Origin: Mobula hypostoma
Lineage: Eukaryota
Direction of reading: 5' to 3'
Assembly (NCBI RefSeq): GCF_963921235.1
Contig: NC_086124.1
Location: forward strand, 24,056,001-24,120,000
Length of the DNA: 64,000 nucleotides
The translations under genes were made by a program, and so were the position numbers. This document shows, in pieces, positions 18,301 to 63,200 of the stretch. Under the pieces are notes generated by a model that was not told the DNA's origin, did not search any database, and saw only the letters and a list, made by a program, of their open reading frames with translations. Within the stretch, counting starts at the first letter, position 1. Each line of letters begins with the position of its first letter.

Positions 18301-21300
18301 GTCAGTCACCGGGCTCTCACTGCCCCGCTCTCTCCCCTCAGCCCCGCGTCAGTCACCGGGCTCTCACTGCCCCGCGTTCTCCCCCCAGCCCCGTGTCAGT
18401 CACCGGGCTCTCACTGCCCCGCTCTCTCCCCTCAGCCCCGTGTCAGTCACCGGGCTCTGACTGCCCCGCGTTCTCCCCCCAGCCCCGTGTCAGTCACCGG
18501 GCTCTCACTGCCCCGCTCTCTCCCCTCAGCCCCGTGTCAGTCACCGGGCTCTCACTGCCCCGCGTTCTCCCCCCAGCCCCGTGTCAGTCACCGGGCTCTC
18601 AGTGCCCCGCGTTCTCCTCTCAGCCCCGTGTCAGTCACCGGGCTCTCACTGCCCCGCGTTCTCCCTTCAGCCCCGCGTCAGTCACCGGGCTCTCACTGCC
18701 CCGCGTTCTCCCCCCAGCCCCGTATCAGTCACCGGGCTCTCACTGCCCCGCTCTCTCCCCTCAGCCCCGTGTCAGTCACCGGGCTCTCACTGCCCCGCGT
18801 TCTCCCCCCAGCCGCGCGTCAGTCACCGGGCTCTCACTGCCCCGCGTTCTCCCCCCAGCCCCGTGTCAGTCACCGGGCTCTCACTGCCCCGCGTTCTCCC
18901 CCCAGACCCGTGTCAGTCACCGGGCTCTCACTGCCCCGCGTTCTCCCCCCAGCCCCGTGTCAGTCACCGGGCTCTCACTGCCCCGCGTTCTCCCTTCAGC
19001 CCCGCGTCAGTCACCGGGCTCTCACTGCCCCGCGTTCTCCCCTCAGCCCCGTGTCAGTCACCGGGCTCTCACTGCCCCGCGTTCTCCCCTCAGCCCCGGG
19101 TCAGTCACCGGGCTCTCACTGCCCCGCGTTCTCCCCCCAGCCCCGTGTCAGTCACCGGGCTCTCACTGCCCCGCGTTCTCCCCCCAGCCCGCGTCAGTCA
19201 CCGGGCTCTCACTGCTCCGCGTTCTCCCCTCAGCCCCGTGTCAGTCACCGGGCTCTCACTGCCCCGCGTTCTCCCCCCAGCCCCGTGTCAGTCACCGGGC
19301 TCTCACTGCCCCGCGTTCTCCCTTCAGCCCCGTGTCAGTCACCGGGCTCTCACTGCCCCGCGTTCTCCCTTCAGCCCCGCGTCAGTCACCGGGCTCTCAC
19401 TGCCCCGCGTTCTCCCCCCAGCCCCGTGTCAGTCACCGGGCTCTCACTGCCCCGCGTTCTCCCTTCAGCCCCGTGTCAGTCACCGGGCTCTCACTGCCCC
19501 GCGTTCTCCCCTCAGCCCCGTGTCAGTCACCGGGCTCTCACTGCCCCGCGTTCTCCCTTCAGCCCCGCGTCAGTCACCGGGCTCTCACTGCCCCGCGTTC
19601 TCCCTTCAGCCCCGCGTCAGTCACCGGGCTCTCACTGCCCCGCGTTCTCCCCTCAGCCCCGTGTCAGTCACCGGGCTCTCACTGCCCCGCGTTCTCCCCT
19701 CAGCCCCGCGTCAGTCACCGGGCTCTCACTGCCCCGCGTTCTCCCCCCAGCCCCGTGTCAGTCACCGGGCTCTCACTGCCCCGCGTTCTCCCCCCAGCCC
19801 GCGTCAGTCACCGGGCTCTCACTGCTCCGCGTTCTCCCCTCAGCCCCGTGTCAGTCACCGGGCTCTCACTGCCCCGCGTTCTCCCCCCAGCCCCGTGTCA
19901 GTCACCGGGCTCTCACTGCCCCGCGTTCTCCCTTCAGCCCCGTGTCAGTCACCGGGCTCTCACTGCCCCGCGTTCTCCCCCCAGCCCCGTGTCAGTCACC
20001 GGGCTCTCACTGCCCCGCGTTCTCCCTTCAGCCCCGTGTCAGTCACCGGGCTCTCACTGCCCCGCGTTCTCCCCCCAGCCCCGTGTCAGTCACCGGGCTC
20101 TCACTGCCCCGCGTTCTCCCTTCAGCCCCGCGTCAGTCACCGGGCTCTCACTGCCCCGCGTTCTCCCCTCAGCCCCGTGTCAGTCACCGGGCTCTCACTG
20201 CCCCGCGTTCTCCCCTCAGCCCCGCGTCAGTCACCGGGCTCTCACTGCCCCGCGTTCTCCCCCCAGCCCCGTGTCAGTCACCGGGCTCTCACTGCCCCGC
20301 GTTCTCCCCCCAGCCCGCGTCAGTCACCGGGCTCTCACTGCTCCGCGTTCTCCCCTCAGCCCCGTGTCAGTCACCGGGCTCTCACTGCCCCGCGTTCTCC
20401 CTTCAGCCCCGTGTCAGTCACCGGGCTCTCACTGCCCCGCGTTCTCCCTTCAGCCCCGCGTCAGTCACCGGGCTCTCACTGCCCCGCGTTCTCCCTTCAG
20501 CCCCGTGTCAGTCACCGGGCTCTCACTGCCCCGCGTTCTCCCTTCAGCCCCGTGTCAGTCACCGGGCTCTCACTGCCCCGCGTTCTCCCCTCAGCCCCGT
20601 GTCAGTCACCGGGCTCTCACTGCCCCGCGTTCTCCCTTCAGCCCCGCGTCAGTCACCGGGCTCTCACTGCCCCGCGTTCTCCCTTCAGCCCCGCGTCAGT
20701 CACCGGGCTCTCACTGCCCCGCGTTCCCCTTCAGCCCCGTATCAGTCACCGGGCTCTCACTGCCCCGCTCTCTCCCCTCAGCCCCGTGTCAGTCACCGGG
20801 CTCTCACTGCCCCGCTCTCTCCCCTCAGCCCCGTGTCAGTCACCGGGCTCTCACTGCCCCGCTCTCTCCCCCCAGCCCCGTGTCAGTCACCGGGCTCTCA
20901 CTGCCCCGCTCTCTCCCCTCAGCCCCGTGTCAGTCACCGGGCTCTCACTGCCCCGCGTTCTCCCCCCAGCCGCGCGTCAGTCACCGGGCTCTCACTGCCC
21001 CGCGTTCTCCCTCCAGCCCCGTGTCAGTCACCGGGCTCTCACTGCCCCGCGTTCTCCCCCCAGACCCGTGTCAGTCACTGGGCTCTCACTGCCCCGCGTT
21101 CTCCCCCCAGCCCCGTGTCAGTCACCGGGCTCTCACTGCCCCGCGTTCTCCCTTCAGCCCCGCGTCAGTCACCGGGCTCTCACTGCCCCGCGTTCTCCCC
21201 TCAGCCCCGCGTCAGTCACCGGGCTCTCACTGCCCCGCGTTCTCCCCTCAGCCCCGCGTCAGTCACCGGGCTCTCACTGCCCCGCGTTCTCCCCCCAGCC

Positions 21301-26130: not shown

Positions 26131-26574
26131 ACACATACCCCAATTTATAACACTAATTCTAATCCCTCGGTCCATGACCCTGATCTGGTCCCTAATCTCC
26201 CTCATCTCCAGTCATCATGTTACTCTTTACATCTGTTATAAATTTGCGGTAAAATTTCAGGATTTAGTTTAGGGACTTAGAGTTAGTTCCAGCACATATT
26301 TCCTTTGATAAGGGCACAAAAGTGTTCACGATACTCCAAGTGTAGTCTGACTGATGCTTTAAAAAGCCTCAGCATTGCATCCTTGCTTTTATGTTCTGGT
26401 GCTGTGGAAACGAGAGTTTCCCTCACCGTTGCACCCCGCTCCCTGATCCCCTGCCATTTCTACTCAAGCCATTGATTTCCCTCCAGCAATCTGGGGGCTG
26501 TTCCAATGACAGGAACGGGGAATGGGAGGTCTCAGCTCACCCCCCCCCCCCCACTGAGTGAATCTGCCACTCAC

Positions 26575-26600
26575 CCGAATCTATGTTTGGTTACTCGGGC
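26575..26600 (-). other. Candidate 26-bp cytoplasmic micro-exon
   Basis: ggtttcttttag|GCCCGAGTAACCAAACATAGATTCGG|gtgagt with strong sites on both sides; in phase 1 it reads (G)PSNQT*IR. Confidence 0.45.
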
Positions 26601-32730: not shown

Positions 32731-33852
32731 GTATAAAGGTAGCTTGCCGAACACCAGTTCTGCCCCAACCAACATTCAGATTCCAATCTGAATCCTTGTC
32801 AACGTAATTTCCGCTGTTGTGATCGCCTTCATCTTCGCCTGGCTGTTCCTTTGCGTGCCGCTACCATTGTTCCATCCGTGTCAGCTCGCTGTTGCTGCTG
32901 TTGTTAACATCTGATAGGCATTCCCAGTTTGTGTAAACTTTTTATTTTAATTTAGCCCCATTTATGATGAATAAATACATACGGCACTATCTCTATGAGT
33001 CTGAAGGTAGTGAAGCCTTGAATTCTAATCCTGCTGAGAAACAGAAACTACAAAAAGTGTGTCAATACAAAGTTACATACCTGGAATATGGTTTTATTCC
33101 ATCCCATCAGATCAGCAATGCCTCATGTCTCTTATTTATAATACTGTACTGTCTAATGAAGCATAAAACCATCAAGATTGCAGGAACACTTCAATAAAAG
33201 ACACCTGGAAAAAGCTACTTATGGTATTACTCAGTTCCAGAAGGTGAAAGGAGCATTGGAAAAGCATTGCACACCTGAGTTATTTGCCAAGAAAGCTAAA
33301 AATGACCATGCTAGTGGTCTCATTGCTTCTGATAACATTTCCAAAATGATAGCAAAGTGTGGAAAATCACATACACTTTGTGAAAGATTAATAATGCCTG
33401 CTGTATCAGAAGTGCTCACCACTGTTCTCAAAATGATGCCAGTATTTTAAAATCAATTCCTTTGAGTAATAACTCTCCAGCTCATCATAGTGATGAAATG
33501 AGTGAAGACATTGAGTATCAACTAGGCACAGAACTACAAAAAACAGAATTTGGGATACAACTGGATCTGTGCACTGTGCGAGACAACAAGGCATTGCTAA
33601 TAGCATATGTACAGTTTATCAAAAATGGAAAAGTTTATGAAGAGATTCTCTTCTTTAAAAAGTTAAAAACAAATATCAATTGAGAATCAATCTATGAAGA
33701 GCTCAAAATGTATTTGAGGATGAAAGTATCCTGATTAGGAACATGATTTCTTGTGCAACAGGCGGAACACCATAAATGATGGGATGCCATGCTGGGTCAG
33801 TGGCATTTATGTAAAAAAAAATCCATGTCTGTTTACAATCCATTGTCTAAAG

Positions 33853-35245
33853 TAATGGTCGCAAGCCAGTCGATCACGATCGACCGGTCGATCTTTGAGA
33901 CTTTCCCAGTAGATCCCAAAAAAAAAGAAAAATAAATACACAAATACTGTTGTAATGTGAGCATTATAAAAATAAGTAATACTAATTAGGATAATGGTAA
34001 TATAGCAAATGCTCCCACTACGGAAAGCTGTTTGTAAAGAGAGGTTGTTTCTGGGGTTGCGGGGTTTTACTTCCGTTCTTTCTGCCCGGTGTGCATCTCC
34101 GTTCGGTGTCTGAGTGGCGGCAAAGGGTTGCAACGATTTGTTGACTTGCTGCCTGAAATAAAGACTTTTCTGTCGACAAGAAACGAGGAGCATGAGGAAC
34201 TGTCAGATGATGCATGGCTACTGGATTTAGGGTTTCTGACAGACCTAATGGCTAAATTAAACGCATTTAACAACGTTAAGACCAACACCTGCCCCACATG
34301 ATAAGCGCAGTAAATGCGTTTAAGGCCAAGCTCTGTGCTTGGATTTCAAATTTAAAGAACGGGAGGCTGACACACTTTCCCAACTTGGAGAAAATGTTAC
34401 AGGCCATCAAGGAAAAAAATGCTTTTCGCCCTGAGCAGTACTGTGCTTACCTGGACAAACTGGCAATAGAGTTCGGTCGGCGTTTTGGGGAGTTAAACAT
34501 CATGAAAGATATTGCTGCATTTATTTCAAACCGATTTCTGTCGATCAATATAGAACAGATAGCAGCCAAATTCCAGCAAGTACTTGGTGTGCCAAGTGAC
34601 ATTGAAATGAAAATAATTGATTTGCAAAATGACATTGAGCTTAAAGCAAAATCAAGGGACGGTGACCTTTGGGGGTTTGTCAGCAGGGAGAAGTTTCCTC
34701 ATCTCACCACATGTGCACTAAAAGTCAGTGCCCACTTTGGGTCAACTTATCTGTGTGAAATTGCATTTTCACAGATGAAAATTATTAAACCTAAGTACAG
34801 AAGCCGTCTTACTGACAGACACCTCACAAACTGTCTCAGACTGGCTGTCTGTAGTTATGAGCCAAATTTCAGGGAAATAGCAGAAAGTATTCAGCCCCAG
34901 TCATCACACCGAGTGCAACAGTCAATTTTTATTATTTATTTTATGTGTTGAAATAAAATTAAATCATGAAACTTAGAATTAAAGGTATGAAGTATTGTAA
35001 TGTTCTTAAAGAAAGACAGCTATGGCCTGTTTGATATGCTAGTTACAGTGTTTTCTTGGTTGAAATAATTTGAAAGTTTGACAAAAGCATTTTATGTAAT
35101 TCAAGTACAATTAGCCCAAATAAAAGACCTCAAGTTGGAAGTAAAATCTGAGCTGTTTTCTCTCTAAACGATTTAGTAGGTACATCTTGCCTTTCACTAA
35201 GGCCGAGGTAGGGGATCTTGGGCTTAAAAATGTTGGCCACCACTT
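33853..35245 (+). mobile_element. Internally deleted hAT transposon (GTF2IRD2/SPIN-like transposase C-terminus)
   Basis: 8-bp TSD gtctaaag / gtctaaat. ORFs WLSGGKGLQRFVDLLPEIK..WLLDLGFLTD and 217 aa ending FGSTYLCEIAFSQMKIIKPKYRSRLTD (hAT dimerisation domain). Confidence 0.88.
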
Positions 35246-35478
35246 GTCTAAATCATCGTCAACATTTTGAGCCAAAAACCTCAACCAGTGACTTTTTTCA
35301 AGCATGACTCTTGTAATATCTGCTAGCAACAAAATTAAAGTTCATCCTTTAAATAGCGGAATATTTTGCCAGTTATGCCAAGATAATGATGAAAATTTTA
35401 AATGCTTGTTTCTTTACACTGAGGTGCATTGGCTGTCAAAGGTCTGTTATTGAAAATACTTCTTTGATCTTTTTTTTT

Positions 35479-36135
35479 AGATTATGAGGACACGCAGTCC
35501 TCTTTTATTGTCATTTAGTAATGCATGCATTAAGAAATGATACAATGTTCCTCCAGTGTGATATCACAGAAAAACAAGACAGATCAAGACTGAAAAACTG
35601 ACAAAAACCACATAATTATAACGTATAGTTACAACAGTGCAAGTAATACCGCAATTTAATAGAAGAACAGACCATGGGCACGGTAAGAAAAGTCTCAAGA
35701 TCTCTCGAAAGCCCCAACATCTCATGCAGACGGTAGAAGGAAGAAAACTCTCCCTGCCATGAGCTTCCAGCGCCACAAACTTGCTGATGCAGCACCCTGG
35801 AAGCACCCGACGACAGTCCGTCTGAAAACTTCGAGCCTCCAGCCAGCCCTCCGACACCAAGCACCGAGCACCATCTCTGCCGAGCGCTTCGACCCCAGCC
35901 CCGACCTCCAGCAACAGGTAAAGCCGAAGATTTGGGGCCTTCCCTCTGGAGATTCTCGATCACACAGTAGCAGCGGCAGCAAACCAGGCATTTCGGAAGT
36001 TCTCCAGATGTTTCTCCGTGCTTTTCACGTCCTTCTCCATCACATCAGGATTGTGCACGGCCTCTATTTAACAAATACAATATCATTTCACCAGGGAGGC
36101 CGCACGCGCTGCATCGCGCCGCCATCTTCTCCTCC
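35479..36135 (-). mobile_element. About 650-bp non-coding retroposon, copy 2
   Basis: Reverse-complement homologue of 2261-2891; 5' end ggagaagatggcggcgcgatgcagcgc. Confidence 0.75.
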
Positions 36136-38749: not shown

Positions 38750-40268
38750 AAGCTTGTAACTCCTCCAGAGTTGTCATAGATCTCTTGGTGGCGTCCCTCA
38801 CTCATCCCCTTCTTGCATTGTCATCCAAAATTCTTATGTGCTTCCTCCTACATCAACTCATTAGCCACATGTTAAGCTGTATAAAATTCCTTTTAATATG
38901 ACACACCAAATCATCACTGGTGCAGCCAATTAGTCTTAGAAGTCACGTAATTTGTTTTCTGTTTTTGGAGACCTGTGTGCAGTCAGGGTGTTTCAATTGA
39001 TAGCAGTAAAAATACATCTATATCTGGGAGGTCCAACTGCTCGTGAACCAGTGTCCAGGTAAAAACTACACCATGAAACAAAAGAACTCTCCAAGCAGCT
39101 CCGCCAAAAGCACAAGTCAGGAGATGGATACAAGAAAATTTTCAAGTCACTGAATATCCCTTGGAGTGCAGTTGTTGATCATCAAGAAATGGAGAAAATA
39201 TGGCACAGCTGTAAATCTGCCCAGAACAGGCCGTCCTCAAAAACTGATTGACCATGCAAGAAGGGGACGAGTAAGGGAGGCCACCAAGAGATCTACAACA
39301 ACTCTGGACGAGTTACAAGCTTTAGTGGCTGAGATGGGAGAGACTGCGCTTACAACAACTGTTACCGGGTGCTTCACCAGTCATAGCTTTATGGGAGAGT
39401 GGCAAAGAGAAATCCACTGTTGAAAAAAACTCACATGAAACCTTGGCTAGAACTTGCCAGAAGGCATGTGGGAGACTCTGAAGTCATCTGGAAGAAGGTT
39501 CTATGGTCTGATGAATCCAAAAGTGAGCTTTTTGGCTATCAGACTAAACACTGTGCTTGGCATAAGCCAAACACTGAACATCCTCAAAAACACACCATCC
39601 CTCCTGTGAAGCATGCTGTGGGGATGCTTCACTGCAGCAGGCCCTGGAAGGCCTGTGAAGGTAGAGGGTAAAATGAATGCAGCAAAATACAGGGAAATCA
39701 TGGAGGAAAACCTGATTCATTCTGCAAGAGAAGTACGACCTGGGAGAAAATTTGTTTTCCAGCAAGACAATGACTCCAAGCATAAAGCCAAAGTTACAAA
39801 GGAGTGGCTTAAAAACAACAAAGTTAATGTCCTGAAGTGGCCAAGTCAGAGTCCAGCCCTCAATCCAATTGAGAATTTGCGGCTGGGCTTGAAAAGAGTT
39901 GTTCACTCACTACTCCCGTGCAATCTGACAGAGCTTGAACAGTTTTGTAAAGGAGAATGGGGAAAATTTGCAGTATCCAGATGTGCAAAGCTGATAGAGA
40001 CCTATCCACACAGACTCAAGGCTGTAAATGCTGCCAAAGATGCATCTACTAAATACTGACTTGAAGGGGGTAAATACTTATGCAATCAATTATTTTGTGT
40101 TTTATGTTTGTGATTAATTTGGATCACTTTGTTGAGATACGTTTTCACTTTGACACGAAAGAGTTATTTTCTGTTGATCGGTATAAAAAAGCCAAATTAA
40201 ATCCACTGTGTTTTAATAGAAAATGAAACTTCTGCGGGGGTGGGGTACGAATACTCTTTATGGCACTG
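38750..40268 (+). mobile_element. Tc1/mariner transposon with a frameshifted transposase
   Basis: LPRTGRPQKL, KKVLWSDESK, FVFQQDNDSKH, WPSQSPALNPIENL; right TIR ggggtacgaatactctttatggcactg followed by TA. Confidence 0.9.
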
Positions 40269-40511: not shown

Positions 40512-40761
40512 CATGTACAGTTCAGAGTCAGAACATTCTGGTAAACACTCCCTGCAATGAAAGGGACGAAGGCTTGGTACGGTTGACTTCAATGACAGCC
40601 CGGGGGTTGCAGTGGTTCAGGTCTCTGATGAAAGCTTCCAAAAGTGAAACGCTGGCCCCAAATTTACTCGCAGATAAAACAAAGTAGGTGACATCTTTGC
40701 TGTTATAACCAAGTCACAGGTCCGTTCTCGAGAACCACGGAGCTGTGCTGGAGTAGATTGT
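40512..40761 (-). pseudogene. MHC class-II-type/W-category beta1 exon relic
   Basis: Phase-1 acceptor cagttag|AC. Frameshift-joined translation DNLLQHSSVVLENGPVT/GYNSKDVTYFVLSASKFGASVSLLEAFIRDLNHCNPRAVIEVNRTK/AFVPFIAGSVYQNVLTLNCT. The middle segment aligns without gaps to the class II beta1 pattern YNxEExxxFxxxxxxFxAxxxLxxxxxxxxN. The donor is degenerate, so the end coordinate is approximate. Confidence 0.6.
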
Positions 40762-41184
40762 CTAACTGATGTGCATTCCAGATAAACACAAATTAGAAGG
40801 ATAGTTTAACAGTCAAAGCCATTCTGAGTTGGGAATGAGTTACTTAAGACAAGGTGATTTCTATCTCCAAAGTTGCAGATTGCATCTATCAGTTACAGTT
40901 TCAATCTCTTTCCTCTCATGTTAGACATCACAACATCAATGCCTCAACAAGCTCTATAGAACCATACAGCATAGAAACAGGCCCTTCAGCCCAACTGGTC
41001 CATGCTGGCCAAGATTCACATCCAAACCAATACTACTTGTCCACATTTGGCACACCTCATTTACCCTGTTTGCACTCCCTGCCTTCCCCTCTTCTCCCTC
41101 TCCCCCCACCTTGAAATCTTTCTTATCCATATATCTTTCAAATGCTGCTGTCCTGCCTGCCTCAGTCAATTCCCCTCGTAGTTT

Positions 41185-43815
41185 GTGGGATTATGATGTT
41201 TGTGGCCATGACAGAGACTTGGCTGGCACCAGGGCAGGAATGGATTCTCGATATTCCTGGATTTCAGTGCTTTAAAAGGGATAGAGAGGGGGGAAATAGG
41301 GAAGGAGGGGTGGCATTACTGGTCAGGAATACTATTACAGCTACAGAAAGGGTGAGTAATGTAGCAGGATCCTCTTTTGAGTCAGTATGGGTTGAAGTCA
41401 GGAACAGGAAGGGAGCAGTTACTCTATTGGGGGTATTCTATAGGCCCCCTGGTAGCAGCAGAGATACAGAGGAGCAGATTGGGAGGCAGATTTTGGAAAG
41501 GTGCAAAAATAACAGGGTTGTTATAATGGGTGACTTTAACTTCCTTAATATTGATTGGCACCTGATGGTTTATACGGGGCAGAGTTTGTTAAGTGTGTCC
41601 AGGATGGATTCCTATCACAGTATGTTGACAGGTCGACGAGAGGGAATGCCATATTAGATCTAGTATTAGGTAACGAATCGGGTAAGGTCACAGATCTCTC
41701 AGTGGGTGAATATCTGGGGGATAGTAACCACCGCTCCCTGGCCTTTAGCATTATCATAGAAAAGGATAAAATCAGAACGGACAGGAAAATTTTTAATTGG
41801 GGAAGGGCAAATTATGAGGCTATAAGGCTAGAACTTGCGGGTGTGAATTGGGATGATGTTTTTGCAGGGAAATATACTACGGATATGTATAGGGATGTTT
41901 AGGGATCTTTTGCGGGATGTTAGGGATAAATTTGTCCCGGTGAGGAAGATAAAAAATGGTAGGGTGAGGGAACCATGGGTGACAAGTGAGGTGGAAAATT
42001 TAGTCAGGTGGAAGAAGGCAGCATACATGAGGTTTAGGAAGCAAGGATCAAATGGGTCTATTGAGGAATATAGGGTAGCAAGAAAGGAGCTTAAGAAGGG
42101 GCTGAGAAGAGCAAGAAGGGGGCATGAGAAGGCCTTAGTGAGTAGGGTAAAGGAAAACCCTAAGGCATTCTTCAATTATGTGCAGGACAAAAGGATGACA
42201 GGAGTGAAGGTGGGACCGATTAGAGATAAAGGTGGGAAGATGTGCCTGGAGGCTGTGGAAGTGAGTGATGTCCTCAATGAATACTTCTCTTCGGTATTCA
42301 CCAATGAGAGGGAACTTGATGACAGTGACGACAATATGAGTGAGGTCGATGTTCTGGAGCATGTTGATATTAAGGGAGAGGAAGTGTTGGAGTTTAAAAT
42401 ACATTAGGACAGATAAGTTCCCGGGGCCTGACAGAATATTCCCCAGGCTGCTCCTCGAGACGAGGAAAGAGATTGCTGAGTCTGGCTAGGATCTTTATGT
42501 CCTCGTTGTCCATGGGAATGGTACCGGAGGATTGGAGGGAGGCGAATGTTGTCCTCTTGTTCAAAAAAGGTAGTAGAGATAGTCCGGGTAATTATAGACC
42601 AGTGAGCCTTACGTCTGTGGTGGGAAAGCTATTGGAAAAGATTCTTAGAGATAGGATCTATGGGCATTTATGGATTAGATTATGAAGACACGCAGTCCTC
42701 TTTTATTGTCATTTAGTAATGCATGCATTAAGAAATGAGACAATATTTCCTTCGGTGTGATATCACAAAACACAGGACAGACCAAGACTGAAAAAACTGA
42801 CAAAACCACATAATTATAACATACAGTTACAACACTGCAACAATACCATAACTGATGAAGAAGTCCATGAGCACAGTAAAAGTTCAAAGTCTCTCAAATG
42901 TCCCACATCTCACACAGACGGGAGAAGGAAGAACTCTCCCTGCCATGCCGACCACAGTCCGATTCTGAGTCATCCGAAAACTTCAAGCTCTGATCAGCTC
43001 TCCGACACCGAGTACTGAGCGCCATCTCTGTCCGAACGATTCGACCTCAATCTTGGTCGCCAACAGCAGGCAAAGCTGGGGATTTTGAGGCCTACCCTCC
43101 GAAAGGTTCCCAACCACGCAGTAACGACAGCAGCGAACGAGTGTTTCAGAAATTTCTCCAGATGTTCCTCTGTGCTTTCACGTCCATTCTCCATCAAATC
43201 AGAATTGTCCACGGCCCCCATTTAACGGATATGATATCATTTAGAGTTCTTTGAGGAGGTGACCAGGCATATAGATGAGGGTAGTACTTGGAGTACTGTG
43301 TCCAGTTCTGGTCGGCTCACTATAGGAAGGATGTGGAAACATTGGAAAGGGTACAGAGGAGATTTACCAGGATGCTGCCTGGTTTAGAGACTATGGATTA
43401 TGATCAGAGATTAAGGGAGCTAGGGCTTTTCTCTTTGAAGAGAAGGAGGATGAGAGGAGACATGATAGAAGTATACAAGATATTAAAAGGAATAGATAGA
43501 GTGGATAGCCAGTGCCTCTTCCCCAGGGCACCACTGCTCCATACAAGAGGACATGGCTTTAAGGTAAGGGGTGGGAAGTTCAAGGAGGAAATTAGAGGAA
43601 GGTTTTTTACTCAGAGAGTGGTTGGTGCGTGGAATGCACTGCCTGAGTCAGTGATGGAGGCAGATACACTAGTGAAGTTTAAGAGACTACTAGACAGGTA
43701 TATGGAGGAATTTAAGGTGGGGGCTTATATGGGAGGCAGAGTTTGAGGGTCGGCACAACATTGTGGGCCGAAGGGCCTGTACTGTGCTGTACTATTCTAT
43801 GTTCTATGTTCTATA
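41185..43815 (+). mobile_element. CR1 LINE (endonuclease to 3' tail) with an internal RT deletion and a nested insertion
   Basis: VAMTETWL, GVFYRPP, IMGDFNF, NYRPVSLTS, EYCVQFWS, (TTCTATG)n tail. Confidence 0.92.
42671..43241 (-). mobile_element. Non-coding retroposon, copy 3 (5'-truncated)
   Basis: Reverse-complement homologue of about 2320-2891, inserted in the CR1. Confidence 0.78.
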
Positions 43816-44049
43816 CGGATGTATACACACATAGTTCTCCAACTGGGACAAGCCTCTTCTCATTACAATCATCGGGATGAGGTTCAGGAGGCTGAAGAAC
43901 CAGCTTCTGCCATCAGATTTCGGAACAGTTCATGAATCCATGAACACTGTTCTCTTTTTTTGCACTAATTTATGATCTATGCACCGTACTGCCGCTGTAA
44001 AACTACAAATGATCAGAATCAGGTTTATTTTCACCGGCGTGTATTAGCA

Positions 44050-44650
44050 GTGGCAATAAATGATTTTAGAGAAAGAAAATTAAACAACCAAGTAAATCAA
44101 TTACAAAAGTATATGTATATATTGAATAGATTAAAATATATATTTAAAAGAAGTGAGGTAGTTTTCATGTTTTCGATGTCCATTTAGGAATCTTATGGCA
44201 GAGGGGAAGAAGCTGTTCCTAAATTGCTGAGTGTGTGCCTTTAGGCTTCTGTACCTCTTTCCTGGCAGTAACAACAAGCCAAGGGCATGTTGTGGGTGAT
44301 GGGGGTCCTTAATAATGGACATTGCCTTTCTGAGGTACCGCTCCTTGAAGATGTCTTGGATACTACGGAGGCTAGCACCCAAGATGGAGCAGACTAATTC
44401 TACAACTTTCTGTAGTTTCTCTCGGTCCTGTACTTGCCCCCTACCATACCTGACAGTGATGCAGCCTGTCAGAATGCTCTCCACAGTACATCTACAGAAG
44501 TTTTAAAGTGTTTTAGGTGACAAACCAAATCTCTTCAAACTCCTAATAAAATATAGCCACTGTGTCGGCTTTTTTTATAGCTGGATCAATATGTTGGGAC
44601 CAGGTTAGGTCCTCAGAGATCTTGACACCCAGGACTTGAAATCGCTCACT
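44050..44650 (-). mobile_element. Rex1/Babar-type LINE 3' fragment
   Basis: ESILTGCITVRYG..DREKLQKVV..FRNSFFPSAIRFLN. Confidence 0.8.
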
Positions 44651-45073
44651 CTCTCATTGTGTCCTATACGAAACTTATGATTTAAACTGATTCCGATACT
44701 GACCACCCTCTGGGTGAAAAAGTTGCACCTCAGGCTCATAGTGAATCTCTCTCCTCTCATTTTAAACCTACGCTCTCTAGTTCTTGATTCCCCATCGCTG
44801 GGAAAAAGACTGCACATTCACCCTAAGTATGCTGTTCAGGATTTGGCAAGGTGGAAATGAGGGGGATCAAAGTGAGCAAGGTTAGGAAGGAGGAGGAGGA
44901 GGAGGCAAAAGCGATCTCCATAATTCCCTCCATTTAAGTGACACCCAACGCCATCCCCTCCCATTTGTCCCTCCCACACACATTTCCCACTAATCCCCCA
45001 GGCACCTTGATAACCATCCCCCATCATAAACCAATTCCTCCTTCCATTTATTCCCTCTCACCTATTGCATGAT

Positions 45074-45290
45074 GGGCATGTGGCCAAGTGGTTAAGGCGT
45101 TCGTCTAGTTACCTCAAGGTTGCTAGTTCGAGCCTCAGCTGTGGCAGCGTGTTTGTGCCCTTGAGCAAGGCACTTAATCACACATTGCTCTAGTCTGTGT
45201 GAGGAGTGGCGCCCCACACAGGCTTCCAATCTGTGCCTTGTAAGACATGAAAAATGCCGGACGCAGGCCTCTCATGGTCTGAGTCGATGC
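45074..45290 (+). mobile_element. tRNA-derived SINE
   Basis: A box TGGCCAAGTGG, B box GTTCGAGCC, then gtgcccttgagcaaggcacttaa (conserved SINE central segment). Confidence 0.75.
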
Positions 45291-45760
45291 TGCCCCCCCA
45301 CCTATTGAACCCATTTCTTCACCCCCGAGGATTAGTCTGCACTGCCTCCTCACACACACCCCTTCAGCACAAATCTCTGAAACCACCCCCTTAAACTCAG
45401 CACCCCCCCTCATCACTCACTCCACATTTACCTGCTCACACTTTGCACAGACCTGCTTAGCTTCAACCAGTCCTCCAACCCATCAGTCCCCCCATCTGTA
45501 ATCACCTTCCAACCCTGCACCACCCAGTAACACACACACTCAATGCACCCACACCTGAATCCCATGCTCTGCAACTGTCTCATTCTTTCCACCCTCTGCA
45601 CCATTCTTCACCCCACCCTCTGCATCTACCTTCTCAACACCTAATGCACCCACCCTTTTAAGTCCATGCCCTCTCCCCCACCCTGCGCACCCACACATCA
45701 CTCCCATTCTCTGTAGCCACCCTTCTGAATCCATCTGCACGACACCCTATCCCTGTTCCA
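45290..45760. repeat. C/A-rich low-complexity tract
   Basis: G-poor sequence of imperfect ccacccc/cacac motifs. Confidence 0.7.
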
Positions 45761-46094
45761 TCTAAGCCGTCCAGATGTGTGGCTGCGCAGTTAGTGAAAT
45801 GTTCCCACACTCACAGCCTTCGCAGCTGCTCAGTTGGAATTTTCTTTAGTGCTCACTGCGAACGTGGATTCAGTTTTATGAATTAAATCATATGTAAATC
45901 TGGGACAGACTACAAGTGGAACATTTAGATGATCTGATCAGGGCTAAGAAGTATCTTTCAGCTGGATGACGTTTACAGGCAATGGATTCATAATAAAGAC
46001 AGACAAGAATAAGTTTATGAAACTAGCAAGATTTTCTTTGTTGTGCTGTATTTAATTATGCCCTTCAATTAATAAGTAAAATAAAATGTACGTG

Positions 46095-46340
46095 ATTCTA
46101 AAAACGCAAACACGAGAAAATCTGCAGATGCTGGAAATTCAAGCAACACACACACAAAATGCTGGTGGAACGCAGCAGTCCAGGCAGCATCTATAGGAAG
46201 AATACAGTTGACGTTTCGGGTCGAGACCCTTCGTCAGGACTAACAGGAAAAAGACATAGTAAGAGATTTGAGAGTGGGAGGGGGAGGAGGAGACCCGAAA
46301 TGATAGGAGAGGAGGGGGAGGGATGAAGGCAAGAGCCTCT
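46095..46340 (-). mobile_element. Penelope-like pLTR fragment
   Basis: Homologous to 10866-11050. Confidence 0.75.
46206..46241 (-). ncRNA. Minimal type I hammerhead motif (intact core, stem I mismatch)
   Basis: AGTC-CTGACGA-A-GGGT(CTCG)ACCC-GAAACGTC-AACT. Confidence 0.55.
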
Positions 46341-46539
46341 GATCTGGGCCGACATTTACATGCCAGACGGCAACAAATTAATTAGCTTGTTTATTTCGGC
46401 TTTTTTCTCAAAGATGTGCTGGGTGCGCTCCGGCTACCGCTGCACACCTGCATGCTTCACGGCCCGGAGGCTGGGGACCACTGCCCTAGAACTGCCCATC
46501 ACTCGCCGGGCCTCATTAGGCATTTGTCAAATCCGCACT

Positions 46540-47810
46540 TGTAGTATTGTGAGCAGTTTTATCTGAGAATAGATGTGCTTGCGTTGGCGAGGGTTCAGAG
46601 GAGGTTCACAGGAAATGATCCTGGGAACGAAAGGGTTAACATGCGGACAGCATTTCACAGGTGAAGGGCAAGTAGTGTCAAGGAAGCAGGGTGTCAGTAG
46701 AAGGACTTAGATTGGGAGAATCGGCAAAGAAGTAGCGGATGGAACAGTGTCGGGAAGTGTATTTTGGCAGAAGGAATAAAGGCGTAGATTATTTTTCTGA
46801 ATGGGAGGAAATTCAGAACTCAGAAGTGCGAAGGGACTTGGGAGTACTTATGCAGGGTTCCCTGAAGGTTAATTTGCAGCTTGAGTCGGTGCTGAGGAAG
46901 GCAAATGCAACGTGAGCATTTGTTTTGAGAGGACTAGAACATAAAAGCAAGGACGTGATACTGAGGCTTTATAAGGTACTGGTGAGCCCTCACTTGAAGT
47001 ATTATGAGCAGTTTGGGGCCTCTTATCTAAGAAAAGATGTACCGGAATTAGAGAGGGCCCAGAGGAGGTTTATGAGAATGATCCCAGGAAGGAAAGTATT
47101 AACCGAGAGACAACACAAATCCGAGGTGCAAAGGGAATTGGAGGTCCTCGAACAGGATTCCCTAAAGGTTAATTTGCAGGTTGAGTCAGGAGTAAGGAAG
47201 GCAAATGCAGTGTTACCATTCTTTTCCAAGCGACTAGCATATAAAAGTAAGGATGTAATGCTGAGGCTTCATAAGAGATTGGTCTGATGCAGATTGAGTA
47301 CTGGAGAGGGTCCGAATGAGGTTAACGAGAATGATCCTGACAATGCAAGGGTTAACATATGATGAGCATTTGATGGCTCTGGGCCTGTACTTGGTGGAGT
47401 TTAGAAGAATAATGGGGTTGGGGGGTGGGGGTGTAAATCTCATTGAATCCTATCAAATACTGAAAAGCCTAGACAGAGTGGACGTGGAGACGATGTTTCC
47501 TCTCATGGGGGAGTCTAGGACCAGAGGACACAGTCTCAGAATAGAAGGACATCCCTTTAGAACAGAGATGAGAAGGAATTCCGTTAGGTAAGTCCCTGAA
47601 TTCATTGCCACAGACTGCTCTGGAGGCTACGTCACTGGGTATATTTAAAGATGAAGTTGATAGGTTCTTGATTATTAAGGGTGTCAAAGGTTACAGGGAG
47701 AAGGCAGAAATATGGGGTTGAGAGAATAATAAGTTAGCCATGAAATGCCAAAGCAGATTCAATAGGCCAAATGGACTAATTCTGCTCCTATAATTTACAA
47801 TCTTATGGTG
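46540..47810 (+). mobile_element. Cluster of CR1 3' fragments
   Basis: Repeated LRLYKVLVSPHLKY / LVEFRR / MGESRTRGHSLRIEG motifs. Confidence 0.8.
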
Positions 47811-47893
47811 ATCAGAATGGTCCAATTGGGCTGAAGGGCCCATATCTGTATTACTCCATGACTGATGTAGGAAGGGGAGATACTGGTCCTCAC

Positions 47894-47933
47894 CAGGTTA
47901 CAGCAGGATTCTCTACGGCAAAACAATCGTAAC
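47894..47933 (-). other. Candidate 40-bp micro-exon following the beta2 exon
   Basis: ttttcaactcattcag|GTTACGATTGTTTTGCCGTAGAGAATCCTGCTGTAACCTG|gtgagg; in phase 1 with the beta2 exon it reads GYDCFAVENPAVT. Confidence 0.4.
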
Positions 47934-48059
47934 CTGAATGAGTTGAAAATGTGAACCAAATCACCCAATCATGTGGCAGCAACTCAATGCATCAAAGCAT
48001 GCAGACAAGGCCAAGAGGTCCAGTTGTTGTTCAGACCAGAATCCGGGAAGATTCCAGGA

Positions 48060-48665
48060 AGCTCAAACAGCCTCAAGGCAAAGCAGATTAAAGATAAGGT
48101 AGGGGCCAATGATCGACTCCCTTTTGCCAATTAAAGTGTCGAGGAAGATTGAATCTGAGGCAACTGCTTGCCTTTTGATTGCAGGGATGGATTTCTCTGC
48201 TGTCAGAGGAGTTTGTGTGGTGCCTTTCACTCACTGTTGTTGGAGGGCAGGCCTCTGTGTTTGAGTGGTCTCTCTCTCTCTCTCGCTGTTGGTCAGAGGA
48301 TATTACCAAGGTTCTGAATTTATGGATTGGACTATGGACTTTTTCAGTCTTATGATTTTTATATTCTGTGTTTTCCCCTGTTCTTTAACCTTATTGTTGC
48401 ATAGCATGTTTTGTTAGTTTTTTGTGCAGGGGAGGGGGTATAGGTCTGAATGTTTTTGTTAGTTTTTTATGTGAGGGAGTGGGGTTTTGGGGGGTTGATG
48501 TTCTTGTTAAGTTTTGATTTTTTTTTGTGCAGTGGAGGTGGGGGGGGTTTGATGTTTATCTTTGAATGACTTCCATGGATTTCTTTTTTTCCTGGCTATC
48601 TGGAGAAGATGAATCTCAGAGTTGAATACTGAGTACATAGTTTGATAATAAATGAACCTTTTATT
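48060..48665 (+). mobile_element. LINE 3'-UTR-type interspersed repeat
   Basis: Terminal gaatctcagagttg...tttgataataaatgaacctt shared with 1-215. Confidence 0.45.
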
Positions 48666-48679
48666 GAATGATTGCTAAT

Positions 48680-49050
48680 GCATGACGGGGTGGTTTGAGT
48701 ATCTCAGAAATTGTTGAGTTCCCGGGATTTTCAGGCACAAGTCTCTGGAGTTTAAAGTGAACAGTGTGAAAAACAAAAAAAAATCATCTACTGAGTGGCA
48801 GTTGTGGGCGAAAGTGCCTTGTTAGTGTGATTTCAGAGGAGAATGGCCAGACTGGTTCCAGCTAACAGGAACGCAATAGTAACTCAAAGAACCGCCTGTT
48901 ACAATGGTAGTGTGCAGAAGAGCGTCAGTGAACGCAAACATTTCGAACCTTGAAGTGGATGAGCTGCAGCAGCATAAGACCACGACCTTACACTCAATGG
49001 TCACTTTATTATGTTGAGGAGGTGCCTAATAAAGTGGCCACTGAGTGTAT
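48680..49050 (+). mobile_element. Tc1-derived non-autonomous element fragment with TIR
   Basis: Ends cctaataaagtggccactgagtgta; same family as 50174-50644. Confidence 0.7.
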
Positions 49051-49128
49051 AATATAGTGTTTGACAGAGTGTGAACCAGATCGTCACCAGTACACTGGAC
49101 CCCAAATTATTCAGACTCTGAGCCTTAC

Positions 49129-49410
49129 CCCAAACTGCATGCAGCTTGTCAGGGACGCTCAAATGCTTGATTTCACAAGTGTAAGTGTCACCCTTCCTGG
49201 GGTCAATTTCGACCTGTCGGCTGACTTGGAACGTCCCATCCTGGTTGGGTAAAATTTTCGTCATTAGCACTTCCCGATCGATCACCACACCATTCCGCAG
49301 CCACGTTGCGTGGATTTTCTTGGGATAAGATCCATGCACTTGGCATGTCAGGGCCAAGGTATTCTCTCTGTTCCTCAGGTGTCTTGAGGTTATTGTGATC
49401 ATCGGCTTCG
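49129..49410 (-). CDS. MHC W-category-like beta2 / class-I-alpha3-like C1-set Ig exon (intact)
   Basis: Acceptor ctgtccactgcag|CG at 49410 and donor G|gtaagg at 49129. 282 bp, phase 1-1, open: AKPMITITSRHLRNRENTLALTCQVHGSYPKKIHATWLRNGVVIDREVLMTKILPNQDGTFQVSRQVEIDPRKGDTYTCEIKHLSVPDKLHAVW. It carries the class I alpha3 motif PNxDGTFQ (class II beta2 has NGDWTFQ). Confidence 0.88.
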
Positions 49411-49545
49411 CTGCAGTGGACAGAAACACATTGAAGCTGAACTTGGTTACAGGATCAGAAAAAGTAAAGAGCAACAGAATTTCAAAGTTCAAAGTATGTT
49501 TATTATTAAAGCATGTGTACATTATACATTATGTGATAAGACTCC

Positions 49546-52354: not shown

Positions 52355-53305
52355 AGGATTTTTACCGGGGGGTAAAAATTACAAACATGAATACATTATT
52401 TGATACACACAAATATACATCTTCATCAGCTATTTGGCTAATACAGTGAGTTTGAAGTTGTCAACACCTGACAGACAGTCATCCATCACATTTTCTGTTC
52501 CTTTTATATGTGTTATTAATAATCCCTTAGACCAGGCTCCAACTTAGCAAACTTCATAGTGGCCAAAAACACTGATGAATTGCGACCAATGTAACCTCTC
52601 ACTGGGTTTCGTCCCGGACCACAATAACAAGGGTCGTCCCATTGCGACTTAGTTTTCTCTCGCCAGGGCTTAGTAGGAGGGGGAGGGGTAGTGACCGCAG
52701 AGTTATTGCAAAACTTCCTACAGTACCCCACCATCTCCAAGAGCCTTCTGAGGGCCCTCTTGTCTGTCGGGGTTGGGATGTCAGAGATAGCCTGCACTGT
52801 AGCTTGCATCGCTGCCAGCTGCCCCTGTGTCACCCCAATTCCCAGGTAAGTGACCTTCGCGTGGCCGAACTCGTATTTTTCAAGGTTCACTATCAAGCTG
52901 GCTTCAGACAGCCGTATTACATCGCCAATACACACCCCTGTGTTCGTCAGCCCTTTAGTCACCGAATTACTCATTCTATAGGAATGTTGTTTGCTAGGCT
53001 GACCTAGTGAAACAGACACCACCCAACGTCCCAGTTCTTTGCATCACCTCGGGACAATCAAACACACGTGTGCAAGTCATTTAATTACTTCTCCTAAAGA
53101 GTCGCTTTGTTCGGGGATTAAGGGAGAGACCTTATCAGCAGAGCTGGCCAAAACAATAGCCTTCTCCCATCTGGTCGATACCATACTCATCTTTTCAAAA
53201 TGTTTTTTTTTCTCTTATCAGGGGGACCCTAGCTTCATTGATTTCCGCGCTAACACCGACTAGGTTTGTTAGCATATCAAAAGCCTGTGACCGTCTCAGT
53301 TCGCG

Positions 53306-55445
53306 TCAGCCATAATCAATAACATCCTTCCTCTTGTGCAGCCGGTAAACCTCTTCCATGATTCCATCAACTGTTTCCTCCAGCACCGCAAAATGTCCAC
53401 CGGGGGGTACCTTGTGGGCCAGGTTAAAAATCTCATCCCCATAAGTCTTTTGCACCACCCCCAACTCCTCATCTGCGGATACTGTCCTTGATTTCCCTTT
53501 CTTCCTTAGCACTTCCTCATCCGCACAATAGCCTACTAGTTCCCTTGTTAATTCTGTGTCAGAGAGAGCTGTCTCTGCAAAAACCATCAGCCCCTCATCT
53601 CGCTCCTGCATCTGCACAAATTCTTTCCTGGCTACTGCTACCTCCGTCCCAGCTCCCTCACTACCTCTTGTCTCCCTACACTCCTTCTTTTCACTTTCTA
53701 CCCCCTTCTCGTACAAGGCTGGCAGAAACGTCTCAGCTAAATTTACTACCGCGGTCCCGTGATGAACCTGTGAGTCCATGGGCGGGGCCTCAATGCTGGC
53801 AGGCTGACCTGTCAATCTCACTGCTGGGAACACGATTCCCCCAGCGAGGTCATTACCGAGCAAGACTTCCACGCCTTTCATCGGTAATTCGGACCTCACC
53901 CCGATCGTGACTAGTCCAGAGACCAGGTTGCTTTGTAAGTGTAGCTGGTGCAAAGGGACGGCCTCTGTCCCTCCCCCAATACCTTTGACCTTGACCTCCC
54001 CAGTCTGGGTCTCTGAGCTAAACTCTAATACACTCTTCAGTATTAGTGACTGACACGCTCCCGTGTCTCTCCAGATCCGCACTGGAACTGGTTTTAACCC
54101 CTCCTTCACCAACACCAATCTGACCGAGATAAACCTCTCGCGCCCTTCCTGAACTTTGGCAGACCTTTCCTTCCCTAGCGGTTCGTTTACCAGCTCGATA
54201 CAGCCAGTCAAAATCGCCGTTTTTCCTTTTCCCGTCTCCTTCTTTGGGGCAAAGCACCTGGACGCAAAGTGTCCGACTTTCCCACAATTATAACAGACGA
54301 CCCCAGGAGACTTCCTACCAGACTGCTCCCGGTCTACCTTATCCTTCTCACTAGTCCCTGGCTTACTTTCTTACTTTTCTGGCGGACTCTCCCTGCCGTC
54401 CTGACTACCCTTCTGGTAGCCTTTACTCGGGGCAAACTTCATTTTATGCGTCAACGCATACTCATCCGCTAACTTAGCAGTTGCGGCTAACGTGGCTGCC
54501 TCTTTCTCATCGAGGTAGGGTCTCATACCCTCAGGGACACAACCTTTAAACTGCTCAATCAGGATCAGCTGTAGCAGTCTGTCATAATCCCCCTCTACCC
54601 CCTTCGAGGCGCACCAACGTTCACAATATGTCTGCATCTCATGGGCAAACTCTAAATACGTGCGGTCCCACTGCTTCCTCGCATTCCAGAACCTCTGCCG
54701 GTATACCTCCGGGACCAACTCATAAATCCTGAGGATGGCCTCTTTCACCACCTCGTACCTCCGGGCATCTTCCATGGACAAAGCTGAGTAAGCTTGTTGG
54801 GCTTTCCCTATTAGTACACTCTGAAACAAAACAGCCCACTTATCCCTCGGCCAGTCCTGACGTAGCAACTTTTTCGAAATGGAGAAAGTACTGATCCACG
54901 TCAGTATCATCAAATGGGGGAACCAGCCTAACCTCCTGGGTCGCCCAGAACCCTCCACCTTGGTTCAGCACAGGCCCCTGCTCTGCCCTTATCCTTAACT
55001 TCTCCAGCTTGAATTCCCTTTCCCTCTGTTTCTCCAACTGCCTCTCTTCTCGCTCCAACTGCCTCTCTCTCTCTTACCTTTCTAACTCCCTCTCTTTCCT
55101 TTCTAACTCTCTCTCGTTCTCTTCTCGCTCCAACTGTCTGTCCCTCTCTTTCTCTTCTCGCTCCAACTGCCTTACCCGGAACTCGTGCTCGAGTCTCAGT
55201 TTTTCAAGCTGCACCAGTACCGCGTCTCCAGCAGGTTTTTCAATAGACACCACCTCCAGCTCGCCTTGGGGAAACACACCTTTAGATACATAGTGCTCTA
55301 CGACAGCTCTGTGTATCTCCTCTCTCCTCATTGTCGACTTCCCCTTAGCAAGATTCAACCATTTGGCCACAGCTTCCAATTCCGATTTCCTGGCATCCTC
55401 TAATGCCTCCAAGGTCGGCGCCTTTATAAATTCCTCAGCCTCCAT
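53306..55445 (-). pseudogene. Gag (SCAN-like, CCHC) plus protease of the Gmr1-like element, frameshifted
   Basis: ORF pieces 55074-55445, 54840-55058, 54371-54958 and 53306-54211: WAVLFQSVLIGKAQQAY, EQFKGCVP, CYNCGKVGHFASRC, IWRDTGACQSLI. Confidence 0.85.
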
Positions 55446-60200: not shown

Positions 60201-63200
60201 ATACTTAAAGGGTTGTCGGTGGATATGCAATGGCAAGCATTTAAAGATTGCACGGATGAACTACAACAATTGTTCATCCCAGTTTGGCAAAAGAATAAAC
60301 CAGGGAAGGTAGTGCACCCGTGGCTGACAAGAGAAATTAGGGATAGTATCAATTCCAAAGAAGAAACATACAAATTAGCCAGAAAAAGCAGCACACCAGA
60401 GGACTGGGAGAATTTCAGAGTCCAGCAGAGGAGGACAAAGGGCTTAATTAGGAAGGGAAAAAAGATTATGAGAGAAAACTGGCCGGGAACATAAAAACTG
60501 ACTGTAAGAGCTTTTATAGATATGTGAAAAGAAAAAGACTGGTAAAGACAAATGTACATCCCTTATGGTCAGAAACAGGTGAATTGATCATGGGGAACAA
60601 GGGCATGGCAGACCATTTGAATAACTACTTTGGTTCTGTCTTCACTAAGGAGGACATAAATAATCTTCCGGAAATAGTAGGGGACCGAGGGTTTAGTGCG
60701 ATGGAGGACCTGAGGGAAATACATGTCAGTAGGGAAGTGGTGTTAGGTAAATTGAAGGGATTAAAGGCAGATAAATCCCCAGGGCCAGATGGTCTGCATC
60801 CCAGAGTGCTTAAGGAAGTAGCCCAAGAAATAGTGGATGCATTAGTGATAATCTTTCAAAACTCTTTAGATTCTGGATTAGTTCCTGAGGATTGGAGGGT
60901 GGCTAATGTAACCCCGCTTTTGAAAAAAGAAGGGAGAGAGAAACCGAGTAATTATAGACCATTAAGCCTGACATCGGTGGCGGGCAAAATGCTGGAGTCA
61001 GTTATCAAAGATGTGATAACAGCACATTTGGAAAGCGATGATATCATCGGACAAAGTCAGTATCGATTTGTGAAAGGAAAATCATGTCTGACGAATCTCA
61101 TAGAATTTTTTGAGGATGTAACTAGTAGAGTGGATAGGGGAGAACCAGTGGATGTGGTATATTTGGATTTTCAAAAGGCTTTTGACAATGTCCCACAAAG
61201 GAGATTAGTGTGCCAACTTAAAGCACACGGTATTGGGGGTATGGTATTGATGTGGATAGAGAATTGTTTGGCAGACAGGAAGCAAAGAGTGGGAATAAAC
61301 GGGACCTTTTCAGAATGGCAGGCAGTGACTAGTGGGGTACCGCAAGGCTCAGTGCTGGGACCCCCATTGTTTACAATATATATTAATGACTTAGACGAGG
61401 GAATTAAATGCAGCATCTCCAAGTTTGCTGATGACATGAAGCTGGGCAGCAGTGTTAGCTGGGAGGAGGATGCAGGGTGACTTGGATAGGTTAGGTGAGT
61501 GGGCAAATTCATGGCAGATGCAATTTAATGTTGATAAATGTGAGGTTATTCACTTTGGTGGCAAGAAAAGGAAAACAGATTACTATCTGAATGGTGGCCG
61601 ATTAGGAAAAGGGGAGGTGCAACGAGACCTGGATGTCATTGTACATCAGTCATTGAAAGTGGGCATGCAGGTACAGCAGGCGGAGAAAAAGACGAATGGT
61701 ATGCTGCCATTCATAGCAAGAGGATTGGAGTACAGGAGCAAGGAGGTACTACTGCAGATGTACAAGGCCTTGGTGAGACCACACCTAGAGTATTGGGTGC
61801 AGTTTTGGTCCTCTAATCTGAGGAAAGACATTCTTGCCATAGAGGGAGTACAAAGAAGGTTCACCAGGTTGATTTCTGGGATGGCACGACTTTCATATGA
61901 TGGAAGACTGGATCGACTAGGCATATATTCTCTGGAATTTAGAAGATTGAGGGGGAATCTTATTGAAATGTGTAAAATTCTAAAGGGTCTGGACAGGCTG
62001 GATGCAGGAAGATTGTTCCCGATGTTGGGGAAGTCCAGAACGAGGGGTCACAGTTTGAGGATAAAGGGGAAGCCTTTTAGGACCGAGATGAAGAAAAACT
62101 TCTTCACACAGAGAGTGGTGAATCTGTGGAATTCTCTGCCACAGGAAACAGTTGAGGCCAGTTCATTGGCTATATTTAAGAGGGGGTTAGATATGGCCCT
62201 TGTGGCTAAAGGGATCAGGGGGTATGGAGAGAAGGCAGGTACAAGGTTCTGAGTTGGATGATCAGCCATAATCATACTGAATGGTGCTGCAGGCTCGAAG
62301 GGCTGAATGGCCTACTCCTGCACCTATTTTCTATGAAAATGGTTATATGGAACCTTGGAGATTTTTGAATCCATCAGTTAGGCAATTCTCTTTCTTTTCT
62401 CATGTTCACCACTCCTATTCCAGGCTACACTACTATTGCTTTATAGATAGCTCCTTGATACCAATGATTAGACAAATTGAGTACACTGCTATAGTTATAT
62501 CTGATCACTTGCCCGTGAAACTGGACCTATGTTTTCCTTTAAACATTAGAGAACAGCCTCTGTGGCGACTTAATCCCCTTTTGCTTTCCAATGAGAAATG
62601 TTATAATTATATATCGGCTAACATTGACACATTCTTCGAGACCAACAAAACTGAGTCGGTATCGTACTCTTTACTTTGGGAAACTTTAAAAGCTTACTTG
62701 AGGGGTCAAATAATATCTTATACCTCACATGCCAATAAAGAGCATAGGAAGGAAATGCAAGTGTTATCGCAATCTATTTTGGACCTGGATAGGCAATATT
62801 CTGAGGCACCCAGTGCGGAATTACATAAAAGCAGGGCTGATTTGCAAGCGAAGTTTAATCTTCTCTCTACAAACCTATCTGAACAATTAATTCTTAAGAG
62901 ACGTGGCCTCTATTATGAATATGGTGACAGGGGGAGCCGGCTTATGGGAGAGTCAAGCTGCATCACGACTTATTCCCCAGATAAGAGACACGCGCCAAAG
63001 CTTGACAAGCAATCCAAAAGAGATTAATAACATCTTTGCAACTTTTTATTCCTCTCTGTATACCTCAGAGTTTCCATCAGATATAATGAATATGGAACAT
63101 TTTTTTGATAATTTGGAAATACCAAAGGAACCAGAGGAGGTGGAGAATTTAGATCGGGCTCTTGGGGCAGGAAGAGATTAATAATGCCATTATGGCTATG

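Follow-up and report, generated by a model that had tools for sequence, protein, structure and literature searches.

The W-category among molecules of the major histocompatibility complex (MHC) was described in 2021 (Okamura et al., PNAS, PMC8713811). In sharks the W genes are clustered, and WA and WB genes form head-to-head pairs, WA_DS10L with WB_DS1L and WA_DS5L with WB_Nds5L, whose start codons lie 272 bp to 4.2 kb apart (PMC8713811). Of the banded houndshark WB_DS1_n2, a second WB_DS1 locus and possible pseudogene, only the beta2 exon was found, in a read-through/fusion cDNA with a normal splice junction (PMC8713811). Here we analysed 64 kb of the devil ray Mobula hypostoma genome (contig NC_086124.1, positions 24,056,001 to 24,120,000; hereafter the window), which contains 0 N and is gap-free, and which carries on its minus strand a beta2 exon of the WB_DS1-like lineage. 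Very probably the locus is a transcribed, truncated WB_DS1-like duplicate that is decaying, accompanied by older debris of the W cluster. The WB features of the window are as follows.

49129 to 49410, minus strand: beta2 (Ig C1-set) exon of a WB_DS1-like W-category beta gene; 100% identical to the models P0162/P0174/P0175, AG and GT splice sites intact, Pfam C1-set E 5e-16 on its translation
49001 to 49128, minus strand: retained-intron 3′ end of isoform X1 (P0174); C-terminal 42 residues 100% to 49128-49004, stop codon 49003-49001
43237 to 43319, minus strand: alternative, transposon-derived terminal exon of isoform X3 (P0175); encodes its residues 202-228 with 100% identity, acceptor ag 43321-43320, stop codon 43239-43237
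40523 to 40779, minus strand: old WB_DS1-like beta1 (groove) pseudo-exon within isoform X2's final intron; tblastn best E 8.5e-6, single copy in the window
35960 to 36063, minus strand: alternative terminal exon of isoform X2 (P0162) in a repeat family of ~620 bp; residues 202-235 match at 100%, acceptor ag 36065-36064, stop codon 35962-35960

Read from 49410 down to 49129, the beta2 exon is intact, 282 nt long and of phase 1-1, and is flanked by an intact acceptor (polypyrimidine tract and AG, ...tccactgcag) and an intact donor (gtaagg). A WB beta2 profile matched it with an E value of 7e-52. The exon corresponds to residues 108-201, at 100%, of the M. hypostoma RefSeq proteins XP_062891232/234/235 (as a set, P0162, P0174 and P0175), in whose models it is exon 3. 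One of these, P0162 (XP_062891234), is named "DLA class II ... DR-1 beta chain-like isoform X2" in RefSeq and was retrieved by a search seeded with the intact M. hypostoma paralogue P0001; its cluster comprises three isoforms that have the leader, a 59-residue beta1 and beta2 in common and differ solely after beta2. Repeat comparison within the window confined the unique DNA surrounding the exon to approximately 49012-49531. The beta2 sequence is 91% identical to that of P0001 and 86-91% identical to those of the M. hypostoma paralogues in general, except P0163 at 81%. Two substitutions mark this copy: its GFYP motif carries S in place of the near-invariant F, and R stands at a position where most WB family members keep L.

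Through a search of 1.84 billion representative proteins, the relatives of this beta2 domain were found to be a small ray/shark group at 46-90% identity, the layout of which is that of a class II beta chain, with a leader, one groove domain, one C1-set domain, a glycine-rich transmembrane (TM) segment and a tail. The domain aligned with the WB_DS1-like rows of PMC8713811 (AKP.ITITS...C.V.GFYP..I..TWLRNG). Supportively, the Amblyraja protein P0166 agrees exactly with the little skate WB_DS1-like beta2 row over the 44 residues that are printed, and the lamnid-shark protein P0017, from a cluster with basking and great white shark entries, is almost identical to the WB_DS1L beta1 row given for the great white shark in the same study. 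Beyond the WB family the next-best matches, at 29-31% identity, were class I or Xenopus class II alpha-like proteins, and no classical class II beta chain was present among the 150 nearest proteins. Against solved structures, beta2 matched DR beta and the class I alpha3 domains of MR1, H-2K and chicken YF to a similar degree; MHC_I was carried by 17 of the 45 aligned beta2 relatives, and its ESM Atlas neighbours were generic C1-set domains only. By identity and by alignment rows, beta2 groups with the named WB_DS1-like sequences and not with class I or classical class II beta.

With classical class II beta genes such as HLA-DRB the locus shares the 282-nt, phase-1 C1-set beta2 exon and the RefSeq name of a class II beta-like gene. 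The Pfam family MHC_II_beta likewise matched the beta1 domain of the intact paralogue P0001 with 24.3 bits against a cut-off of 20.9, whereas its match to P0162 reached 18.9 bits, under the cut-off, and the nearest non-WB relatives of beta2 are class I alpha3 domains, a mixed character as described for the W-category. The gene, which public annotation calls class II beta-like, belongs to the W-category. At least five WB_DS1-like proteins are listed by RefSeq on this M. hypostoma chromosome, so that WB_DS1-like genes have multiplied in devil rays, and the copy studied here is anchorless and ends in transposon-derived exons. RefSeq already holds the gene, filed under a class II name, and the locus is a defective member of the W-category, a little-studied MHC group known since 2021; a literature search for the W-category in Mobula found no article.

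The 3′ portion of the gene distinguishes it from its intact relatives. All three isoforms end within intron or repeat sequence, each route adding 27-42 unrelated residues before a stop codon, and the spliced tails of X2 and X3 both retain phase 1. The retained-intron end of X1 overlaps a repeat at 48802-49011, and the X3 terminal exon partly coincides with the antisense 3′ end of a long interspersed nuclear element (LINE), with repeat copies at 43286-43529 and 43000-43242. The repeat that holds the X2 terminal exon belongs to an unclassified family of ~620 bp with three copies in the window (35477-36088, 42675-43242 and 2262-2876) that are 74-76% identical. One copy of this family provides the X2 terminal coding exon, and another abuts the X3 exon. 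None of the three isoforms contains a membrane anchor.

The initial annotation had reported that no second beta2 follows the beta1 relic and that no glycine-patterned TM exon exists in the window, and both observations were confirmed here. In tblastn with 176 MHC/Ig proteins and in a profile scan of the window, no second beta2 was detected, and only two C1-set exons were found, namely the exon at 49.1-49.4 kb and a WA alpha2 exon at 1.83-2.10 kb. For the TM and tail exons, tblastn with seven WB tails (word size 2, E up to 1000) returned nothing credible in the window, and profile hidden Markov models of the leader, the connecting peptide/transmembrane (CP/TM) and the cytoplasmic (CY) segments gave noise only. 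A combined hydropathy and glycine scan, for which true WB TM helices (mean hydropathy 2.0-2.4, 4-5 Gly) served as calibration, revealed no TM candidate in the window except a weak one within a repeat. No CP/TM/CY exon was therefore found by these searches within the 49 kb downstream of beta2. The tail-like exons that had been proposed at 26.6-24.5 kb found no support, the region giving only weak plus-strand matches at chance level, such as 10 residues at 26557-26586.

On the 5′ side, residues 1-107 of the models, comprising the leader and the 59-residue beta1, had no true match in the window. The beta gene spans 31,526 bp in the gene table, and counting this span from the X2 stop at 35960 places the start codon at ~67,485, about 3.5 kb past the window end. 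Since the leader and beta1 of this gene are thus predicted to lie beyond 64 kb, where the initial annotation had suggested looking for them, the domain order according to the gene models is the normal one of leader, beta1 and beta2, and the inverted order that had been proposed would be an effect of the window edge. What had appeared as a new MHC domain order is corrected by these models to an ordinary truncated gene copy cut by the window edge. The beta1 domain of P0162 lacks its last 27 residues, which form the helical half of the groove wall. The called upstream neighbour is a 2164-residue scavenger receptor cysteine-rich (SRCR) gene, head-to-head with the beta gene at a distance of 7.7 kb, and not a WA gene; an undetected WA pseudogene could lie between the two.

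The beta1 relic at 40523-40779 does lie, as initially described, downstream of the beta2 exon (49129-49410) on the same minus strand, and is spliced into none of the three annotated isoforms. Ten batoid WB proteins matched it at 40.6-40.8 kb by tblastn, the top one being the sawfish protein P0164 (E 8.5e-6). A frameshift-aware alignment ran from the motif GMHI at 40779 down to 40523 and covered 85 of ~86 domain positions, revealing two in-frame stops, one extra codon and one -1 frameshift near 40577; the AG acceptor before the relic is lost as well. The identity of the relic to beta1 domains amounts to 26-35% for batoids and 21% for sharks. The functional beta1 copies of Mobula, by comparison, are 50-71% identical to those of stingray, 51-59% to those of sawfish and 30-45% to those of skate, and the relic diverges from every batoid beta1 more than the functional batoid copies diverge among themselves. 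Because the relic is far more decayed and diverged than the intact beta2 exon, with its 81-91% identity to paralogues, it is much older as dead sequence than that exon; it sits in the last intron of the beta2 gene but forms no part of that gene. It probably remains from an earlier WB gene that stood here, and a broken WA_DS5-like gene 36 kb further on is probably a leftover of this kind too. Assignments of the relic as WB_Nds5L-like or DS3-like were rejected: it is without their cysteine pattern, starts with the batoid DS1 motif GMHI and is matched solely by batoid DS1-like proteins.

Compared with the WB_DS1-like lineage as described (PMC8713811), the locus has a beta2 sequence that aligns with the published rows, and the intact paralogues possess the full set of leader, beta1, beta2, CP/TM and tail, with the conserved TM glycines; in the gene studied here the CP/TM/CY part is missing, beta1 is shortened, the 3′ ends are transposon-derived and the introns extend over 13-17 kb. 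Because it has no CP/TM/CY exon and no isoform with one, this gene is a truncated derivative of the WB_DS1-like family and not a complete member. Set against the intact paralogues, the gene shows the lesions of a pseudogene, in that its TM and tail exons have been lost, its beta1 is shortened and its three tails are non-homologous. A head-to-head WA partner near the start codon is also not called; the start codons of the shark WA_DS10L/WB_DS1L pairs are just 272 bp apart, whereas the called neighbour here is the SRCR gene. With the houndshark WB_DS1_n2 the locus has in common an orphan but spliceable WB_DS1 beta2 exon, but differs in that the models keep a leader and a partial beta1 and that beta2 is joined on its 3′ side to transposon exons instead of to a WA exon.

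Four things were observed directly, namely exon identities, splice sites, the lack of a TM exon and the decay of the relic, and from them the following course may be proposed. The minus-strand gene would consist of a leader, a beta1 lacking its last 27 residues, an intron of ~16.5 kb filled with transposons, and beta2, after which transcripts would either read into the intron or splice to a cryptic exon, at 43.3 kb in a transposon or at 36.0 kb in a repeat, with no CP, TM or cytoplasmic exons left in the gene. We presume that the models reflect real transcripts and that the product is without function, and any order of the duplication and deletion events is likewise an inference. Given the shortened groove domain, the lack of an anchor and the substitution in GFYP, the most probable reading of the gene is as a duplicate that is transcribed and decaying; the signs of decay are the 27 residues gone from beta1, the missing anchor, the three makeshift 3′ ends, and the changes from F to S and from L to R. 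Among three explanations offered by the initial annotation, that of tandem WB copies eroded in association with transposable elements comes closest, but the copies are a truncated young one and a much older beta1 pseudo-exon. That of one multi-domain transcription unit is not supported, in that the three annotated isoforms terminate at 49.0, 43.2 or 36.0 kb, leaving the relic and the alpha exons unused.

A model of the related Mobula birostris, P0002 (XP_072102720), joins beta2 to the same repeat-derived exon, with 31 of 33 tail residues identical, and its gene has the same SRCR gene head-to-head upstream, with a span of 25.9 kb vs about 30 kb in M. hypostoma. P0002 begins at an internal Met within beta1, and the model cannot start earlier. 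The shared structure suggests that the truncation is older than the split of the two species. As a separate observation, the WB_DS1-like beta2 sequences are more alike within species (P0162 and P0001, 91%; P0002 and P0158, 95%) than between the two truncated copies (P0162 and P0002, 87%), a likeness among copies that hints at possible gene conversion between paralogues.

Three other explanations of the locus were considered. The gene could encode a functional, secreted WB chain that lost its TM exons, captured a transposon-derived terminal exon and was kept in devil rays, and such a secreted W-category molecule, if real, might help to show what W-category proteins bind. The open beta2 and intact splice signals agree with this, as does the location of all stops in terminal exons, so that nonsense-mediated decay is not expected; the M. 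birostris model shows the same join of beta2 to the repeat exon, and the houndshark WB_DS1 yields shorter cDNAs without the penultimate CP/TM/CY exon (PMC8713811). However, the predicted beta1 is short of its last 27 residues and the M. birostris model starts no earlier than the internal Met of beta1; three differing 3′ ends suggest sloppy termination and not one selected tail; F is replaced by S in GFYP, and L by R where most WB members have L; and the SRCR gene stands where an alpha partner would be called head-to-head. We therefore regard a functional secreted chain as unlikely, and the more specific case, in which an anchorless W-category beta chain with a transposon-captured C-terminus has been kept in both M. 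hypostoma and M. birostris, as decidedly unlikely.

Little credence is likewise given to the view that beta2 and the relic are what is left of a tandem pair of WB genes, about equal in age, from which one deletion took the TM and tail of the first together with the leader of the second, and another the rest of the second. Both are on the same strand and of the same WB_DS1-like lineage, only transposable-element sequence occurs between and after them, and the W genes of sharks are clustered (PMC8713811), all of which would fit; but beta2 is intact and 86-91% identical to M. hypostoma paralogues (P0163, 81%), whereas the relic, at 26-35% to all batoid beta1 domains, is interrupted by stops and a frameshift and no longer has its acceptor, and this unequal decay indicates that maintenance of the two ended at very different times. 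An assembly artefact, by which this repeat-rich region would contain a collapsed or chimeric join, might be suspected from the density of transposable elements and the 12-kb satellite, and misassembly was the third explanation offered initially. It is highly improbable, as the window is gap-free, the three gene models consistently span 36-67 kb, and the independent M. birostris assembly contains the same beta2-to-repeat-exon structure, of 25.9 kb vs about 30 kb, beside the same SRCR gene.

For the preferred reading as a transcribed, decaying duplicate, some points weigh on the other side. The XP_ models are predictions, and the link of leader and beta1 to beta2 rests on protein models and coordinate arithmetic. 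The fully open beta2, the perfect splice signals and a similar TM-less architecture in a second species could reflect a retained, possibly secreted product. The beta2 of P0002 is 87% identical to that of P0162 and 95% identical to that of another M. birostris gene, P0158; P0002 need therefore not be an orthologue, as gene conversion may have blurred the relationship or P0002 may be a paralogue.

At the other end of the window lie the exons of a WA gene, separated from the WB debris by a satellite.

3909 to 4183, minus strand: WA_DS5-like alpha1 exon, reading open, boundaries approximate; matches WA_DS5-like rows of Dataset S1 (PMC8713811)
1819 to 2099, minus strand: WA_DS5-like alpha2 (C1-set) pseudo-exon; in-frame stops 2037-2035 and 1833-1831
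12345 to 24244, no strand: satellite with a GC-rich unit of 47 bp, between the WB debris and the WA pseudogene; Tandem Repeats Finder, 252 copies, 92% matches, GC 0.71

The minus-strand open segment 4250-3846 contains FKSISERLYYSY...NGHIFD...SPFLFYDY, and as Pfam gave no match on this segment, the alpha1 assignment rests on the published alignment rows. The piece of alpha2 between its stops matched C1-set with an E value of 8.8e-11, and by hand count alpha2 has ~68% identity with the little skate WA_DS5-like row over its N-terminal part. No WA TM exon was seen around 983-1639, where it would be expected downstream of alpha2, and no plus-strand WB partner for the WA pseudogene was detected in the window by tblastn and profile scan.

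The beta2 and alpha exons are 45 kb apart, with the 12-kb satellite between them. As DS1 pairs with DS10 and DS5 with Nds5L in sharks, the DS1-like beta and DS5-like alpha exons here are not a cognate pair; the DS1 and DS5 lineages adjoin in shark gene order. The same-strand arrangement of beta followed by alpha, which had been contrasted with the head-to-head class II layout, is real as a layout, but the two do not hold up as a pair. The old W-cluster debris, consisting of the beta1 relic and the WA_DS5-like pseudogene, persists beside the truncated WB copy.

The rest of the window is mostly transposon debris in addition to the satellite. The satellite has a strong skew, being C-rich on the plus strand, and gives rise to artefactual open reading frames (ORFs) as long as 2763 codons. 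A tandem repeat with a 31-bp unit (21 copies, 87% matches) occupies 983-1639, which in minus-strand direction comes shortly after the WA alpha2 pseudo-exon. Read by eye, with no family search made, the ORFs at 33000-35000 (+) and 39166-40059 (+), in the interval from the satellite to the beta1 relic, resemble fragments of hAT and Tc1/mariner transposases. Likewise by eye and with no family search made, gag-, protease- and reverse-transcriptase-like ORFs at 52516-55445 (-) perhaps represent a long terminal repeat retroelement. LINE reverse-transcriptase ORFs are located at 5742-7682 (+) and 60524-62252 (+); one of them is an uninterrupted ORF of 646 codons, and the element may be young.

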